From the NCBI GenBank assembly GCA_025558095.1, contig JAIVFI010000041.1, positions 186,001-250,000 on the forward strand: a stretch of DNA of 64,000 bases. Direction: 5' to 3'. Each line of letters starts with the position of its first letter. Position 1 is the stretch's first letter. The position numbers were made by a program, and so were the translations under genes. The stretch is from Hyaloraphidium curvatum SAG 235-1. Its lineage: Eukaryota > Fungi > Monoblepharomycota. Positions 11,484-18,117 of this stretch are shown here, in pieces. The notes under the pieces are model-generated. The model saw nothing but the letters and a program-made list of their open reading frames with translations. It did no database searches and was not told the origin of the DNA.

Positions 11484-12754
11484 CTCGGCGGTGGAATCGG
11501 GATATGATGCCTCGAGTTGTCCTTTGTAGGGGACGTAGGGACCTTCGATGGCGTTGCACTGCGCGGTCCCTAGCTCGGATTGACTGTCTCCTTGCCAAAC
11601 ACGCTGCTTTGGAGCCTAGGTGGGAGGCCTCCTCAGTCTGAGGCATTTCGACCTCTTCTCCAGCGGGAAACGCAGTGGATTCGGTCTCGCGAATGTCCGC
11701 CTCGACCTCCAAAGCAGCTAACTGCCTCATCCGTGGACGAGTGTGCTGATCCACGCATGCTCATCCCATCGAAACATGGAATGGGAAATCATGCGCTGCT
11801 AGTTGCCTCGACCGGACCGCATGTAAGAAGCAATATGCAGGTGAGATGAGGCGAGAACCATCAAGAACGGTGCAGCTCTTGAGACCCAAAGGAATGGAGA
11901 TACGAGCTCGCATAGAAACGGCGTGCAGAAGTGCAGTCCAGTAATGCTAGGCGTTGACGGCCACGCGCATGATTGGGAGGCACGCGCGGTCACCACCGAA
12001 CCCCGCGAGCATCACCCTCCAGACGCGTTGCCCGCGGCAATCGCCTCAAAACTTTACTCTTGTCATGGCTTTGCAGAGATCTGGCGCGATTCTGCTCGGG
12101 CGGCTCCCCGGCGCGGCGCGTCCACTATACGAGCGGAGCGTGCCCCGCCAGGACACGTCGGCCACGGCCTTCCGGGCGTCCTGGGTGCCAACGGCGCCTG
12201 CAGGCTCGACCCGTGTTTACTTTCGGGGGAGCGAACGAGGACGTGCATGTCGGGTTGGCGTGGGCCCCTGCCAGGGGTGAGCGGCAGGCGCGGCTTCAGG
12301 ACGGGGAGAGGAGGAATGGCGGGCAAAGTATGCTTGCTCTGCGCGTGGACGCGATCTAGCGTCACTGGCTGCGGCGCAAGAGAGCCACTGGGCGTCGCTG
12401 GATTGCTCGGCTGTGCTTCATGTGCGGGGGGAAGGAAGTTCCGCCTTGGAATGTCTCCCTGCCTCCCCCTGCAGTCGGAAGACGCGTGTGTCGCGCCCTA
12501 CGCTACCCAGGTTCTCTATCTGTTTTCTCTTTGTCGGCGCGGCCCATGTCACGTGACTTGCCGCGCGCCGCGCGCCGCGCGGTGGTCGTGCAACCGCGGG
12601 TTGGTGGGACCGGGAACTTCGCGTCACCTCCCGGTTCAAAAGGCGGATCTCCCCCCCCCCCCCCGCGCAGCTCGTCACACCGCCCACCTCCGGCTCCGAA
12701 AGCTCGATCGCCGACGGCCAACCACCGCCTCCGCTCCGCTTCCGCGCCGCCAAG

Positions 12755-15700
12755 ATGAAGCGCTTCGCGCTCATTCTGACCCTGGGCCTTTTGGCCCTCT
12801 TCGCCGTCGCCCGCGCGGCGCCGGTTTCGGACGACGCCGTCGACGAGACCTCCAAGGATCGCCACGGGCTGTTTGCCCGCCTCGGCGGCTACTTCACCAA
12901 GACCGTGACCTCGAAATCGGTAAGCGCTGCCCGGGCCGCCGGCCTGTGCCGATCAAGCTGACCGCCCTGATCGCCAGATTTCGACAACCACCCGGACCAA
13001 GACCTCCGTCACCACCAAGACCAGGACCTCAACATCTGTTACGACCAAGACTTCCACCTCCAAGAGCACCAAGGTGGGAGGCTGTCGCGGAGTGCAGCTT
13101 CGAGGCTCGTTCTGACTTGGTGCCACCCCCGCTTCCCTGGCTCCTTGCCTCTGCCTCCTCCTCCCTCGTCCGTTGATCAGACCGTGACAAAGTCGACGAC
13201 GACCACCCGCGTTTCGACGAGCAAGGTCACAAAGGTAGGTCACGGCGGCGGCGACGCCCGCCTTGCGGACGGCCTTGTGATCTGATCTGATCGCGCCTGT
13301 CCTCCGCAGACATCGACGAGCAAGGGCACGACGACGCGCGTGTCCACGAGCAAGGAGACCAAGGTGTGTTTGCTCTGGGCCGCCTCGGAAACCATTGCTG
13401 ATTCGGTCGCCCTCCCAAGACTCGCTTCGTCACGGTGCCCGTGCCGACGACGCAGAAGGAGACCGAGACCAAGGTGTGTTTGCTCTGGGCCGCTTGGGAG
13501 ATCATTACTGATTCGGCCGCCCTCCCAAGACTCGGACCTCGTTCGTCACCGTTCCGACGACGCAGAAGGAGACCAAGGTGTGTTTGCTTTCGGCCGCCTT
13601 GGCGATTATTGCTGATTCGGTCGCCCTCCTTAGACTCGCACGAGCTTCGTCACCGTGCCAACGACTCAGAAGGAAACCAAGGTGGGGACTTTTCCGTGTC
13701 GTCCGCCTGGCCGGTCTTGACCTCGGAACTACGCCAGACCTCGTTCGTGACCCTGCCGACAACCATCATCAGCTCGCGCACCAGCTTCGTGACGCTGCAG
13801 ACCACGCAAAAGGAGACGAAGGTGAGCGCTTTTCAAGCTACTCCTCAGCTGCTCCTCGGCCGATCGTGCGCTGATCAATTGGCTCGACAGACTTCTTTCG
13901 TGACGATTCGGACCACCGACACCCTGGTTGTGCCGACCGTGAGTTCATTCTTCATCGGCGTGAACAATGGCTTGACTTGCTCGATCTGGCAGACGATCCT
14001 GGACCTGCAGACTACGACCCAGCTGCTGACGGACACCCTGCGCACGACCGAGACGCTCATTGTGCCGACCGTGCGTGATTGCGTTGCTCAGCTATGGCGC
14101 CGTTGACCCCCGGAGCCTGGCAGACGATCCTGGACCTGCAGACTACGACCCAGCTGCTGACGGACACCCTGCGCACGACCGAGACGCTCATTGTGCCGAC
14201 CGTGCGTGATTGCGTTGCTCAGCTATGGCGCCGTTGACCCCTGGATCCTGGCAGACGATCCTGGACCTGCAGACTACGACCCAGCTGCTGACGGACACCC
14301 TGCGCACGACCGAGACGCTCATTGTGCCGACCGTGCGTGATTGCGTTGCTCAGCTATGGCGCCGTTGACCCCTGGATCCTGGCAGACGATCCTGGACCTG
14401 CAGACTACGACCCAGCTGCTGACGGACACCCTGCGCACGACCGAGACGCTCATTGTGCCGACCGTGCGTGATTGCGTTGCTCAGCTATGGCGCCGTTGAC
14501 CCCCGGATCCTGGCAGACGATCCTGGACCCGCAGACCACGACCCAGCTGATCAGCACCACCGAAACTCTCGTCGTCTCCACCGTGAGCTGCTGCGGGTTG
14601 CTTGATCGGAGCCGCGCTGACCTGTCCCTCGCCGCAGACGCTTACGGACACCCTGCGGACGACCGAGACCCTCCTTGTGCCCACTGTGAGTGATTTGCGC
14701 CGGGCAGCCATGGCGCCTTTGACACCAGATGCTGCCAGACGATCCTGGACCCGCAGACCACGACCCAGCTGATAAGCACTACTCAAACTCTCATTGTCCC
14801 GACCGTGAGCTGCGGCGGCGTGCTCGATCGGGAGCCGCGCTGACCTGCCTTCTCGCCGCAGACGCTGACGGACACCCTGCGCACGACCGAGACGCTCCTT
14901 GTCCCGACCGTGAGCTGCGACGGCTTGCTCGATCGGGAGCCGCGCTGACCTGCCCCTCGCCGCAGACGCTGACGGACACCCTGCGCACGACCGAGACGCT
15001 CCTTGTCCCGACCGTGAGCTGCGACGGCTTGCTCGATCGGGAGCCGCGCTGACCTGCCCCTCGCCGCAGACGCTGACGGACACCCTGCGCACGACCGAGA
15101 CGCTCCTTGTGCCGACGGTGAGCTGGGGCGGCTTGCTTGATCGGGGCCCGCGCTGACATGCTTCTCGCCGCAGACGATTATCCAGCCTTCGACGGTTACA
15201 CTCACGGAGCTGGTGTCTACCACGGTTATCCAGGGATCGACCGCGACCGAGGTGGGCGGCGGCGGCGGGGCGTCGAAATCGAGCAAAGAATCTCACCCTC
15301 GTTCTCCATCGCAGACCGTGTCTACGACGCTCATCCAGCCCTCGACGATCACGCAGCTGGTGTCTACGACAGTTTTCCAGGGATCGACCGCGACCGAGGT
15401 GGGCCGCGCAGGCGTCGATGTCGAAATCGAGCAAAGAATCTCACCCTTGTTCTCTATCGCAGACCGTGTCTACCACGCTGATCCAGCCCTCGACGACCAC
15501 GACGACCCAGATTTCGACGAGCACGGAGCTTTGCACCTCGTCCACGACTACCACGCAGAGTACGACCACCGCAAGCACGACCACTTCCGCCACCTCGACC
15601 CCCACCTGCTCGTCCGACACGTCGTATGGGTGGATCCCTGGACAGACCTACTCGCCTTCGTCGGAGCCCCGCTGGTCACTGATCATCGGACCCATCGGAC

Positions 15701-16193
15701 CCGGTACGTACACCGCCAACCTGGCTGCCGGCGCGTCTAGCTTCAAGAATGGTGGCACCGGAGGGTGCTCCCAGCCGGGGACTGGCGGCGGATGCGGCGT
15801 CCCCTCCGGCAACGTCAACCTGCAGATCACCACGACGGGCATCTCGGCCTCGTTCACGATGTCTGGCGCCGCCACCGACGCCCACCTCTTCTACTCGTGC
15901 ACCAAGCCCACCGGAGGAGAGGCACCCGGATCTTTCAACGTCGTCGCGGACTACGGCGCCTGCGGCCTGCAGAGCTTTACCCTCAACAGCGGATCGGATT
16001 ACCCGACAACATGCACGGAGGTGCGCCACTCGCGGCGCGCGCTTTCGTTGGACTGCGGCTAATCCCGGCCTCCATATCCCAGGTCTTCGTGATGATTCAC
16101 ACGAGCGGCCCCGTTTCCACGACCGGCTGCCAGCCCGAAGGTTGCGTCCCGCTCCGCCTCCGTGGCCGCGGGTTCCCGCGCTGGCTCGCCTGA
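12755..16193 (+). CDS. secreted Thr-rich mucin/adhesin-like protein, 23 exons, ~705 aa
   Basis: Signal peptide MKRFALILTLGLLALFAVARA. Exons 12755-12919, 12978-13073, 13181-13234, 13310-13363, 13420-13473, 13530-13577, 13634-13681, 13738-13821, 13891-13938, 13993-14070, 14124-14201, 14255-14332, 14386-14463, 14517-14582, 14638-14685, 14739-14804, 14862-14909, 14966-15013, 15070-15117, 15174-15251, 15315-15398, 15463-16020, 16083-16193. All are flanked by GT..AG and are multiples of 3. Confidence 0.85.
13364..13681 (+). repeat. diverged tandem repeat, 3 intron+exon units (104-110 bp)
   Basis: Three introns GTGTGTTTGCT...CTGATTCGG..GCCCTCC..AG, each followed by a TR..FVTVP..TTQKETK exon. Confidence 0.85.
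13993..14516 (+). repeat. tandem repeat 4 x 131 bp (78-nt exon + 53-nt intron)
   Basis: ACGATCCTGGACCTGCAG... starts at 13993, 14124, 14255 and 14386. Copies are nearly identical, including the introns. Confidence 0.95.
14862..15173 (+). repeat. tandem repeat 3 x 104 bp (48-nt exon + 56-nt intron)
   Basis: ACGCTGACGGACACCCTGCGCACG... at 14862, 14966 and 15070, with GTGAGCTG...CTGAC...CTCGCCGCAG introns. Confidence 0.95.
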
Positions 16194-16526
16194 TTCGCCT
16201 GATTGGGGGGGGGGGGAAGACGCACGGATCAACATCGCTTAGCGCTCCGCGCAACACCATCACACCAACCATCTACGTCGATCTACGTCAGAATAGATAT
16301 CGCCATGTGCTTAATTTCTGTCTGTTCCCGGCCCGAGATCGGCTCTCGTCCGTCCGAGATTTCGGCGAGCCTCCGATCCGCGTTGTTCGTCAGCCGCGAT
16401 CGGCTGTTGGGAAACGTCTCCCCGTCCCATCGCCCGCCTGCATCGCCCTCTTCCAGACCGGAACAACCTTCCGCAACCGCCTCCGCCTCTGCTTTCCCAC
16501 GTCGGCCCCCCGCGCCGCCCTCCGCG

Positions 16527-17495
16527 ATGTCCGCCCCCGCGAAATCCTACTCCCTCTGGGACTCGTCCTTCAACTGGATATGGTGCCGTCCTCGCCCCAT
16601 CGCGCCGCCGGACGAAGGCCTGACTATCGGCGCAGGAAGCGGATGGGCCCGGACGTCGACCGCAAGCTCGCGCCCTGGAAGAAGCGCGTCTACGGGGACG
16701 TGGGTCGCCCGCGGCTACAGAACGCCCGGCGAAGGGAGGCTGACTGCCCCTCCCGTCCCGCTCCGCCTTTGCCGTCGGGGTTGCAGGTCACGGGCAACAT
16801 CCTGGAGATCGGCGCCGGCCACGGCGCCACTTTCGCCTACATGGACCCCTCCAAGATCTCGCATGTGACCGCCTTGGAGCCCAACGAGGCCATGCACGAG
16901 CTGCTCCGCGCCAACGCCGCCAAGGCCGGGTTCGAGGAGGGCAAGGGCAACCTCGCAGTCGTCTCGGAACCCGCGGAGGTCTCGGCGCCGCCGCCGGACG
17001 GCGCGCAGCACGCTGAGGGGGAGGCGGCGCGGTTCGACGCCGTCCTGTCGAGCCTCGTGCTTTGCACGGTGGCGGATCCGCCGGCGGTGCTGAGGAATGT
17101 CCACGCGTGGTTGAAGGACGGGGGCCAGTTCAGGTTTTTGGAGCACATGGGCGATGCCGCGGGGACGCGGAGGAGGTGGTGGCAGGAGAGCCTGACGCCG
17201 GTGGGTTCCTCCGTGTGCGGATTGGAGGCGTTCTTTCTGATTCGTTTGCGGGAAGGTTTGGAAGTACATCGGGCACGGGTGCCACCTGGATCGGGACCAC
17301 GCCGAGATGGTGCGGACGCTGGAGGAGGGCGGCAAGAGGCTGTTTGGGCGGGTGGAGCTGGAGGAGATCGACCCGCTGGAGGAGACCGTGGACGGCATGG
17401 TGGGTTGCCCGCGGCTAACTGGAGATCGAGGCTGACTTCAACGACCGAAGTGGATCGCGAGGCCGCTCATCTTCGGCACGGCGTGGAAGCAATGA
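16527..17495 (+). CDS. class I SAM-dependent methyltransferase (METTL7/Methyltransf_11-like), multi-exon
   Basis: ILEIGAGHGATFAY, TALEPN, FDAVLSSLVLCTV..P..VLRNVHAWLKDGGQFRFLEH, GCHLDRD. The last exon ends WIARPLIFGTAWKQ*. Confidence 0.85.
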
Positions 17496-18117
17496 AGATC
17501 AGCCTATGTTGGTGTGTAGATGATTAAGCAATCCATTATTAGTTTACTGCGCTCCACGGCTTCGAGGATGGAGCGGGTTTGGCGATGGCCGGACGCGGCT
17601 TGTAGGCGGGGGGGTGTCCAGTCATCGGTCCGCGCCGAACTCCACCACCGATTCGGCTCCCCCGTGGAGCCGACAGCTCCTCGGGCCACACGCTTCCACC
17701 GAGCTCCATAGCGAGTCCAACTGACCAAGCTGCTTCTTAGAGGAGCCGGCCAGTGCCTCTTGTCGGCACGTGAGTTCGCACTGGTTGTCCAAGGCCACTC
17801 CCCGGCCGCCCCCGGCCCGCGATGACACTTTTCTGAGGCTTGGGCGGCCGGACCGGGCTTTCGGCGGGAAGCCATGCCGCGGCCGAGTCTGACTGCGGAT
17901 CCACCTCCACAGCCTTCAAACGGCTTCGGACCCCGCCGATCGGACTTCTATTCTTACGGGCGAGCCATTGATTTCGATTTCAGGCGCCGGTTCCTGGGCG
18001 GCCTGTGCGCGGCGGCGTTGCACCCCAACCATGTTTTGCGGGCGGCCGAGCGTCCCCGGCTCCACCCGCCCGCATCATCTCTCGGGCCACGGGTGCCCGG
18101 GAGCGCGGAGCGAGAAA

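Follow-up and report, generated by a model that had tools for sequence, protein, structure and literature searches.

The closest precedent for the gene described here is found in spider silk genes, and the likeness is best taken as an analogy, not a homology. In genes such as those for flagelliform spidroin and Argiope MaSp2, iterated, homogenised small introns bound the repeat units, and some silk genes have two intron types that alternate within a two-exon, two-intron core unit; the authors of that study stated that they were aware of no other case in which two homogenised types alternate (PMC9779670). The cassette gene of the chytrid-grade fungus Hyaloraphidium curvatum SAG 235-1 lies in a window of 64,000 nucleotides (contig JAIVFI010000041.1, positions 186,001 to 250,000). 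As in the silk genes, its introns bound the repeat units of a repetitive, probably secreted protein and are homogenised within the gene. The two-type alternation is shared as well (introns 14-16 here, introns 6-10 of a paralog), and so are hints that paralogs exchanged sequence or expanded in parallel. The differences are that a fungus and not a spider carries the gene, that the product is a Thr-rich stalk and not a Gly/Ala/Pro silk, that exon size is much lower (48-96 nt) and the gene itself small (3.4 kb), and that homogenisation is incomplete, leaving five intron families plus singletons. The first-pass annotation of the window had presented the gene as its best candidate for an undescribed surface-variation system, a description that is not supported, since iterated homogenised introns bounding repeats are known for spider silk and other repetitive proteins (PMC9779670). 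The same build is known from spider silk genes; no new mechanism is revealed at present.

The same annotation had likened the gene to the micro-exon genes (MEGs) of schistosomes, in which symmetric exons of 6-36 bp make up ~80% of the coding sequence (CDS) and for which variation by alternative splicing has been demonstrated (PMC5825161). The fungal gene does resemble the MEGs in its probably secreted product and in a run of symmetric exons, skippable in frame, between longer first and last exons. Its short exons measure 48-96 nt and account for 61% of the CDS, unlike those of the MEGs, and there is no sequence relationship; membership among the MEGs is not supported.

The Als, Flo and Epa adhesins of fungi keep their repeats inside one exon and have an N-terminal ligand-binding domain and a C-terminal GPI signal. 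The product of the cassette gene is like them in having a signal peptide and long Thr-rich, beta-branched, probably O-glycosylated repeats whose copy number changes by recombination. It is unlike them in that the globular domain is C-terminal, a GPI-like tail is lacking, and the repeats are split by introns. In animals, the fibrillar collagen genes with their 54-bp exons, elastin, and titin PEVK are cassette-exon genes whose introns are long and lack homogenisation. These share with the fungal gene the use of one short in-phase exon per module, obtained via exon duplication, and a frame that survives the loss or gain of a module; the homogenised introns and the fungal setting set the cassette gene apart, and the proteins are unrelated. 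A build of one short in-phase exon and one co-duplicated, homogenised intron per module has so far been documented mainly in animals (silks, collagens, elastin, and titin) and schistosome MEGs; the cassette gene shows it at work in an early-diverging, intron-rich fungus as well.

Structure and expression of the cassette gene

The gene, in a model rebuilt from the sequence, lies on the + strand at 12755-16193 and consists of 23 exons separated by 22 GT-AG introns that measure 53-107 nt, with the ATG at 12755 and the stop codon at 16191-16193. The first-pass annotation described it well in this respect: all 22 introns are in phase 0, 20 internal exons measure 48-96 nt, nearly all of these (19/20) begin with a Thr codon, and of the "at least four" repeat families that it proposed, all four that it named are found. 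All exon lengths are divisible by 3, and all 21 internal exons are symmetric, which agrees with its further point that the frame would in principle survive the removal or copying of any one of them. Once the 22 introns are removed, the frame is open for 705 codons, giving a product of 705 aa. It was also right that the ORF track had missed the gene. ORF lists do so because the length of 17 of the 22 introns is not divisible by 3 and 13 introns contain in-frame stops. For the annotation of chytrid genomes this has a practical side: genes of this kind escape ORF-based methods and are difficult to assemble from short reads.

The gene is transcribed and spliced. RNA-like contigs from run X1 hold spliced joints, bounded by GT..AG, exactly at introns 1-8, 14-16, and 22, so that 12 of the predicted junctions are matched to the base, and loose contig ends are compatible with the junctions of introns 9/10 and 20/21; these are k-mer contigs, in which junctions within near-identical copies (introns 10-13 and 17-19) are not resolvable and rare isoforms are invisible. 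Unspliced versions of introns 2, 3, and 5-7 occur in the X1 contigs at similar depth. A skipped-exon joint was not found in these contigs, which cannot show rare isoforms. The RNA joints place the ends of introns 4 and 5 at AAG acceptors (13419 and 13529), as the exon sequence in the first-pass annotation had implied. A naive splice model, which took CAG acceptors 36 nt downstream for these two introns and so produced exons of 18 and 12 nt, was discarded, the RNA joints using AAG.

All features of the gene are on the + strand. Transcription starts at or before 12678, giving a minimal 5' UTR at 12678-12754, and record 1 of the X1 contigs spans 12678-12918 and then joins 12977. Exon 1 (12755-12919; 165 nt, 55 aa) translates into a signal-peptide-like N-terminus. 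Exons 2-4 (96, 54, and 54 nt), together with introns 2 and 3, occupy 12978-13363 and code for a basic Thr/Ser/Lys-rich part of the stalk; RNA joints are present at introns 1-3, and introns 2 and 3 lack sequence relatives. A cassette array follows at 13364-13890, comprising exons 5-8 (54, 48, 48, and 84 nt), of the type ending K-E-T-K, and introns 4-8, with five RNA joints. Tandem Repeats Finder (TRF) reports a period of 104 and 3.1 copies here, and introns 4-6 form intron family A, with identities of 82-89%. At 13891-13992, exon 9 (48 nt) and intron 9 (54 nt, family D) act as a bridge, since the exon 9 peptide merges the motif of the preceding exon family with the motif of the next; intron 9 is 89% identical to intron 5 of the paralog.

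The most regular part of the gene is at 13993-14516, where a 131-bp cassette is present in four copies as counted in the assembly (TRF period 131, 98% matches). Each copy is a 78-nt exon with a 53-nt family-B intron (exons 10-13), and the exons are 100% identical. The 78-nt exon type resembles a fusion in which the 66-nt type supplies the start and the 48-nt type the end. Exons 14-16 (66, 48, and 66 nt) and their introns, at 14517-14861, have three RNA joints and intron types that alternate as C, B, C. They are followed at 14862-15173 by three copies of a 104-bp cassette made of a 48-nt exon and a 56-nt family-C intron (exons 17-19; TRF period 104, 94% matches), the exons being 96-100% and the introns 86-100% identical. 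Two copies of a cassette of ~148 bp (15174-15462; TRF period 148, 89% matches) contain exons 20-21 (78 and 84 nt) and two family-E introns (63 and 64 nt) that are 86% identical to each other; a loose RNA end at 15313 fits a spliced junction.

Exon 22 (15463-16020; 558 nt) codes for the last Thr-rich linker and, from ~15595, for most of a Cys-containing beta-sandwich at the C-terminus, and an RNA contig spans 15461-16018. Intron 22 (16021-16082; 62 nt, phase 0) is removed by the RNA joint 16018->16081 in a 725-nt contig and, judging by alignment A1 and the structure model, interrupts the domain just ahead of its last beta-strand. The translation of exon 23 (16083-16193) supplies that strand, two Cys, an Arg-rich C-terminal tail, and the stop codon. 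The minimal 3' UTR, which includes a G12 run, covers 16194-16230, the RNA contig reaching 16230.

Cassette duplication, the paralog, and competing readings

The explanation that we consider probable as a whole is that a secreted Thr-rich stalk gene grew by duplication of exon-plus-intron cassettes, with concerted evolution and purifying selection acting on the copies. TRF arrays with periods of 104, 131, 222, 104, and 148 bp extend across 13352-15501; each unit holds an intron, and every repeat unit terminates at one. None of the periods 104, 131, and 148 bp is divisible by 3, and therefore the introns were copied together with the exons. The introns themselves fall into five sequence families (A-E) and six singletons, at only ~5 kinds of position, and identity within the families is 74-100%, compared to 51 +/- 4% in shuffled controls. 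Family B (introns 10-13) is 96-100% identical and family C (introns 14 and 16-19) 84-100%, and homogenisation across the gene is partial. Repeat periods and intron families agree with the first-pass claims that the repeat unit includes the intron and that the gene is modular, built from tandemly duplicated exon-plus-intron cassettes.

By this account, the 20 short symmetric exons of the stalk arose through repeated tandem duplication, presumably by unequal crossing-over or slippage, of units made of one or two exons with their introns, and an in-frame deletion fusing two exon types also took part. Only units composed of an exon of 3n nt and a whole intron keep the reading frame. All introns are in phase 0 because the array goes back to a handful of founding cassettes, and the uniform phase reflects inheritance and purifying selection. 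This means that "22 of 22" overstates the surprise, because the 22 introns do not count as 22 separate events and their phase is mostly inherited. The effective number of independent introns is ~5-11, which gives P from ~0.03 down to 4e-5 for an assumed phase-0 share of 0.4-0.5. As for selection, substitutions between cassettes are mostly synonymous. For example, exons 15 and 17 code for an identical 16-mer peptide, yet they differ by 6 synonymous and 0 non-synonymous substitutions. Such a pattern argues for purifying rather than diversifying selection on the peptide modules.

A paralog is present on another contig (G000:C12:239057-240785), with 12 exons and 11 introns, all phase 0. The first exons of the two genes are 63% identical, and four of the five intron families (A-D) are common to both. 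The paralog has an expansion of its own, a 259-bp two-exon unit present three times, and its introns 6-10 alternate as C, B, C, B, C with 100% identity within each type; the two paralogs add a second example of strict alternation between two homogenised intron types. Intron identity is higher within a locus (93-100%) than between the loci (84-94%), and concerted evolution would for this reason be what keeps the copies alike. Different units were expanded at each locus, and therefore copy number has changed over evolutionary time by DNA-level events, a part of the first-pass interpretation that is supported. Orthologs with this stalk were not seen in other species; related contigs from two public runs (L015 and L016) carry the C-terminal domain behind single-exon Thr-rich linkers, without the cassette array. 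Two non-canonical joints in the RNA, 13937->14738 (an 800-nt skip) and 15116->14520 (a 597-nt back-joint), were considered as exon skipping and rejected, being the ordinary junctions of the paralog. They have 2/67 and 1/65 mismatches to the paralog's spliced CDS, compared to 5 and 2 to the cassette gene, and three loose-end sequences match exactly in the paralog's spliced CDS. Another phase-0 exon stalk in a secreted protein of H. curvatum was partly confirmed by eye and with a script; a generic chain scanner for runs of symmetric exons was dropped since it returned false chains in GC-rich DNA.

The two non-canonical joints and three loose ends have a bearing on whether the gene is a working surface-variation device, in which exon skipping and frequent unequal crossover would produce a ladder of stalk lengths or epitope variants of an adhesin, as in the MEGs. 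They fit the canonical mRNA of the paralog better than any skip, the exon sizes are outside the MEG definition, an adhesin architecture is absent, and the modules appear to be under purifying and not diversifying selection. H. curvatum also lives freely in the plankton as a saprotroph, where no immune system would be driving variation. Such a device is therefore unlikely, even though the internal exons are all symmetric and any skip would be in frame, copy number differs between the two loci, one further phase-0 stalk has been partly confirmed in this genome, and the unspliced forms in X1 indicate that splicing is not fully efficient. Variation of the protein by alternative splicing, as proposed in the first-pass annotation, is not supported. 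Equally doubtful is a broader proposal, that H. curvatum has a whole class of symmetric-short-exon secreted stalks and that regulated skipping or intron retention tunes the length, and perhaps the module order, of this one. If true, a fungus would have its own version of micro-exon-gene variation, with homogenised alternating introns as recombination or splicing guides.

Short, uniform introns (53-57 nt) that fall into sequence families could also point to introner-like mobile elements, inserted once per unit into an earlier single-exon repeat. A 28-nt core from family C, the largest of the intron families, has 9 matches in the 32-Mb genome when 3 mismatches are allowed, all of them in the two genes or in a fragment of the paralog. 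Each repeat period is the sum of an exon and its intron, and the identities of exons and introns rise and fall together, which co-duplication explains and separate insertion does not; this origin is the least credible of those considered. Hardly more probable is an artefact, in the form of a collapsed or mis-assembled repeat, or a decaying pseudogene. The near-identical 131-bp copies are indeed hard to assemble, and unspliced contigs occur, but a frame open for 705 codons over 22 introns, a transcript that is found and spliced, the mostly synonymous substitutions between cassettes, and a second intact locus built alike all speak against it.

The stalk protein and its C-terminal domain

A gene grown by cassette duplication would here code for a signal peptide, a Thr-rich stalk of ~475 aa, and a C-terminal disulphide-capable beta-sandwich. 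The N-terminus opens on basic residues, followed by a hydrophobic core of ~15 aa and an Ala-rich stretch at its end, and is judged by inspection to be like a signal peptide. The stalk begins ~30 aa past it, is 39% Thr and 9% Ser, consists of the repeat families, and has no N-glycosylation sequon. From inspection and composition, the product is probably secreted, mucin-like, and heavily O-glycosylated, and we infer a role at the cell surface or in a matrix. The term "adhesin" in the first-pass annotation is not supported. There is no transmembrane segment and, by inspection, no GPI-like tail, the C-terminus being Arg-rich and not hydrophobic, and no N-terminal binding domain was seen, exon 1 having no Pfam match above threshold. 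The sole globular part is the C-terminal beta-sandwich.

Pfam and other searches were run exon by exon. Relatives of the C-terminal domain amount to 14 matches in its own genome (own-genome paralogs at E 5e-28 to 1e-13) and 18 among 1.84 billion representatives (E down to 3e-63). Alignments A1 and A2 show similarity over the whole domain, with its conserved Cys and the Gly-rich C-x-x-P-G-x-G-G-x-C-G core. One paralogous family member, P0004 (KAI9006384.1, H. curvatum), has an exact coding match at a paralogous locus of this assembly, and its AF2 model has a pLDDT of 84. Exon 22 and 17 family members matched no Pfam family for this domain, a PDB profile search gave chance matches only, and Foldseek against the PDB returned nothing at E <= 0.001. 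In the wide VIA-align search, the best Z was 5.3, in the noise range, to generic sandwiches (MATH/TRAF, ToxA, and CBM-like folds). Shape matches in the ESM Atlas, at TM 0.60-0.67, were to unnamed bacterial proteins, and the Atlas feature search stayed below 0.9. The domain is a Cys-containing beta-sandwich of a lineage-restricted family, from Hyaloraphidium and relatives, without a Pfam or PDB relative, and the gene marks this uncharacterised family. With at least 10 loci in the genome, the family may serve as a cell-surface or matrix module. Tails like that of exon 23 are also seen in P0008 and P0012.

Gene structure, transcript and splicing

The region from 12755 to 16193 on the + strand holds a single gene, with its ATG at 12755 and stop codon at 16191-16193, according to a reading of the sequence from 12300 to 16700 and a scripted splice model. 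Its 23 exons are separated by 22 GT-AG introns, each 53-107 nt long. All 23 exon lengths are multiples of three, so all 22 introns are in phase 0, as the first-pass annotation had stated. Its 20 internal exons of 48-96 nt, described there as nearly all Thr-first, are exons 2-21 of the model, 19 of which begin with a Thr codon. Also as proposed, the mechanical ORF list misses the gene and contains only fragments of it, because 17 of the introns are not multiples of three in length and 13 carry in-frame stops.

RNA agrees with the predicted junctions. In the k-mer contigs of X1, a public sequencing run that behaves as RNA, GT..AG-bounded joints fall exactly at introns 1-8, 14-16, and 22, and loose ends agree with junctions at introns 9/10 and 20/21; junctions within near-identical copies are not resolvable in such contigs. 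The transcript covers at least 12678-16230. Read tools marked no segment of the window as resembling human DNA. The RNA joints include AAG acceptors at introns 4 (13417-13419) and 5 (13527-13529); the third copy of this cassette has TAG, and intron 4 of a paralog on contig C12 also has AAG. Unspliced contigs cross introns 2, 3, 5, 6, and 7 (13044-13765) at a depth similar to that of the spliced joints, while the intergenic flanks have almost no coverage. It is thus likely that introns are retained to a substantial degree or that pre-mRNA is plentiful, contig depth being a weak measure.

Complementary homopolymers flank the gene: a run of 13 C (12653-12665) closely precedes the mapped start of the transcript, and a run of 12 G (16206-16217) comes just past the stop codon, the latter with a 1-nt length difference in one DNA-like contig. 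The downstream neighbor at 16528-17527 (+) encodes a class I SAM-dependent methyltransferase (Methyltransf_23/11/12, E 4e-15) with high X1 coverage and no evident tie to the stalk gene.

Origin of the cassettes and the C12 paralog

Tandem Repeats Finder reports arrays with periods of 104, 131, 222, 104, and 148 bp across 13352-15501. Since none of 104, 131, and 148 bp is divisible by three, the intron was carried along in each duplication, as the annotation had it, and the reading frame is kept only because the copied intron is spliced out. Pairwise alignment of all introns gives five families, namely A (introns 4-6), B (10-13 and 15), C (14 and 16-19), D (9), and E (20-21), with six singletons; identity within families is 74-100%, against 51 +/- 4% in shuffled controls. 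The sites that introns occupy are of only about five kinds: at the end of the signal exon, behind K-x-T-K, V-P-T, and T-A-T-E, and within the C-terminal domain. The families, the few positions, and the co-duplication together indicate that the uniform phase was inherited from few founders, and the effective number of independent phase events is 5-11 rather than 22. The stalk arrays thus probably grew by tandem duplication of exon+intron units. In the 131-bp unit, the 78-nt exon begins like the 66-nt exon type and finishes like the 48-nt type, which indicates that an in-frame deletion took out an intron. An introner-type origin was considered and rejected: the 28-nt core of family C is confined to this gene, its paralog, and, elsewhere in the genome, a degenerate 3' fragment of that paralog.

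Searched at the DNA level, the genome yielded one related locus, the paralog at G000:C12:239057-240785 (L013:5058-6785; G000 is the window's own assembly). Its 12 exons are separated by 11 introns, again all in phase 0 (11/11), and its 367-aa product has the same signal exon (63% identity) and Thr-rich stalk modules, lacks the C-terminal domain, and ends with an Arg-rich tail. Intron families A-D are common to both genes. The paralog has expanded a 259-bp two-exon cassette to three copies, unlike the units expanded in the window gene, and its introns there alternate C, B, C, B, C with 100% identity per type. Intron identity is higher within a locus (93-100%) than between loci (84-94%), and between loci the internal cassettes are more alike than exon 1 (70%) or the promoter (57%). 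Such a pattern suggests that the two loci expanded recently and independently and evolved in concert, possibly with exchange between the two genes.

The promoters, at 57% identity over 400 bp, share GTCACGTGA, a CACGTG-box, ~180-210 bp upstream of the ATG (window 12548-12557; L013:4880-4889), and a block closer to the start, CGCGTCACC...CAAAAG.CGG (window 12620-12647; L013:4940-4966). An inverted repeat of ~138 bp with 89% identity (L013:7029-7165 and L014:~460-600) brackets ~3.4 kb that separate the 3' end of the paralog from a degenerate copy of its final exons with the Arg-rich tail (L014:600-930; G000:C12:~244600-244930). Repeat and fragment look like remnants of an insertion, an inversion, or a partial duplication.

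Variation, constraint and comparison with known genes

The annotation saw here a surface-variation system working through exon skipping and crossover, and two non-canonical joints in the X1 contigs could be read as skipping: an 800-nt skip, 13937->14738, and a back-joint, 15116->14520. Both were rebuilt from their reported coordinates and differences and compared with the canonical spliced CDS of the paralog and with products of the window gene. They differ from the paralog at 2/67 and 1/65 positions and from the window gene at 5 and 2, and so fit canonical junctions of the paralog better than skipping. X1 loose-end sequences also match the paralog's spliced CDS exactly, one of them being present there alone and absent from genomic DNA. 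Joints and loose ends together establish expression and splicing of the paralog. No exon skipping in the window gene is shown in the X1 contigs, which can miss rare isoforms. Nor are the modules free to vary. Cassettes with the same peptide differ mainly at synonymous sites (exons 15 and 17 have six synonymous changes in ~14 sites and no non-synonymous change in ~31), so the module sequence matters. The variation system is therefore largely unsupported.

The architecture is an already known type of gene build. In the MaSp2 and flagelliform silk genes, small near-identical introns, sometimes of two alternating types, delimit the repeat units, and such iterated introns have been argued to favor unequal crossing-over and homogenization; regular repeat-delimiting introns are known in several proteins (Baker, Corvelo and Hayashi, PMC9779670). 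Spider silk genes share this architecture with the window gene and its paralog, although the protein is unrelated and the kingdom different. The proposed likeness to schistosome micro-exon genes (MEGs) is poorer: in these, symmetric exons of 6-36 bp account for ~80% of the CDS and splice variants have been demonstrated (PMC5825161), whereas the short exons here measure 48-96 nt and account for 61% of the CDS, with no variants shown.

In the H. curvatum genome the cassette build appears to be recurrent. A small secreted-looking gene at G000:C41:378085-378454 (L017:4085-4454) begins with three exons of 138, 39, and 72 nt, all in phase, encoding a signal peptide and then Thr-rich peptides. The build is not obligatory, because L005, a member of the C-terminal-domain family, holds its Thr-rich repeats within one exon, as do two related public-run contigs.

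The protein product and its C-terminal domain

The spliced frame encodes 705 aa with, on inspection, a signal-peptide-like N-terminus. Between residues ~56 and 530 the composition is 39% Thr, 12% Leu, 9% Ser, and 8% Val; this part contains no N-glycosylation sequon, and eight of the nine Cys lie within the final ~175 aa. Database and fold searches took single exons as queries. They found no Pfam family for the C-terminal domain, and among 1.84 billion representative proteins only 18 matched it at E <= 0.001, of which three carry the name H. curvatum and most others come from assemblies of public runs. A search with the C-terminal exon gave 14 matches in its own 31.9-Mb assembly, and one of these loci encodes exactly, in both exons, P0004 (KAI9006384.1), a protein of Hyaloraphidium curvatum (Fungi, Monoblepharomycota). 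An AlphaFold2 model of residues 28-193 of P0004, a complete family member, from a 17-row alignment is all-beta and confident (pLDDT 84, pTM 0.82). Foldseek found no relative of it in the PDB at E <= 0.001, the best VIA-align Z of 5.3 gave no convincing structural relative, and the Atlas matches (TM 0.60-0.67) are unnamed bacterial proteins. Alignment and model place intron 22 ahead of the last strand of the domain.

The label "adhesin" is unsupported, because the 705-aa product has no TM segment, its C-terminus is Arg-rich rather than hydrophobic and so gives no GPI-type signal, and the domain has neither a Pfam family nor a convincing structural relative. Als/Flo-type adhesins, unlike this gene, have another domain order, another anchor, and single-exon repeats.

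Arg-rich C-terminal tails recur in the window gene (16083-16190), in the family members P0008 and P0012, and in the domain-less paralog (L013:6750-6785), and might act as a signal for processing, sorting, or wall binding. In several members (L002, L015, L016), an intron follows right after the conserved Y-S-C-T-K of the domain; the gene of P0004 and proteins predicted from public-run contigs are among its carriers, and the window gene lacks it. Many database models are truncated right after this motif.
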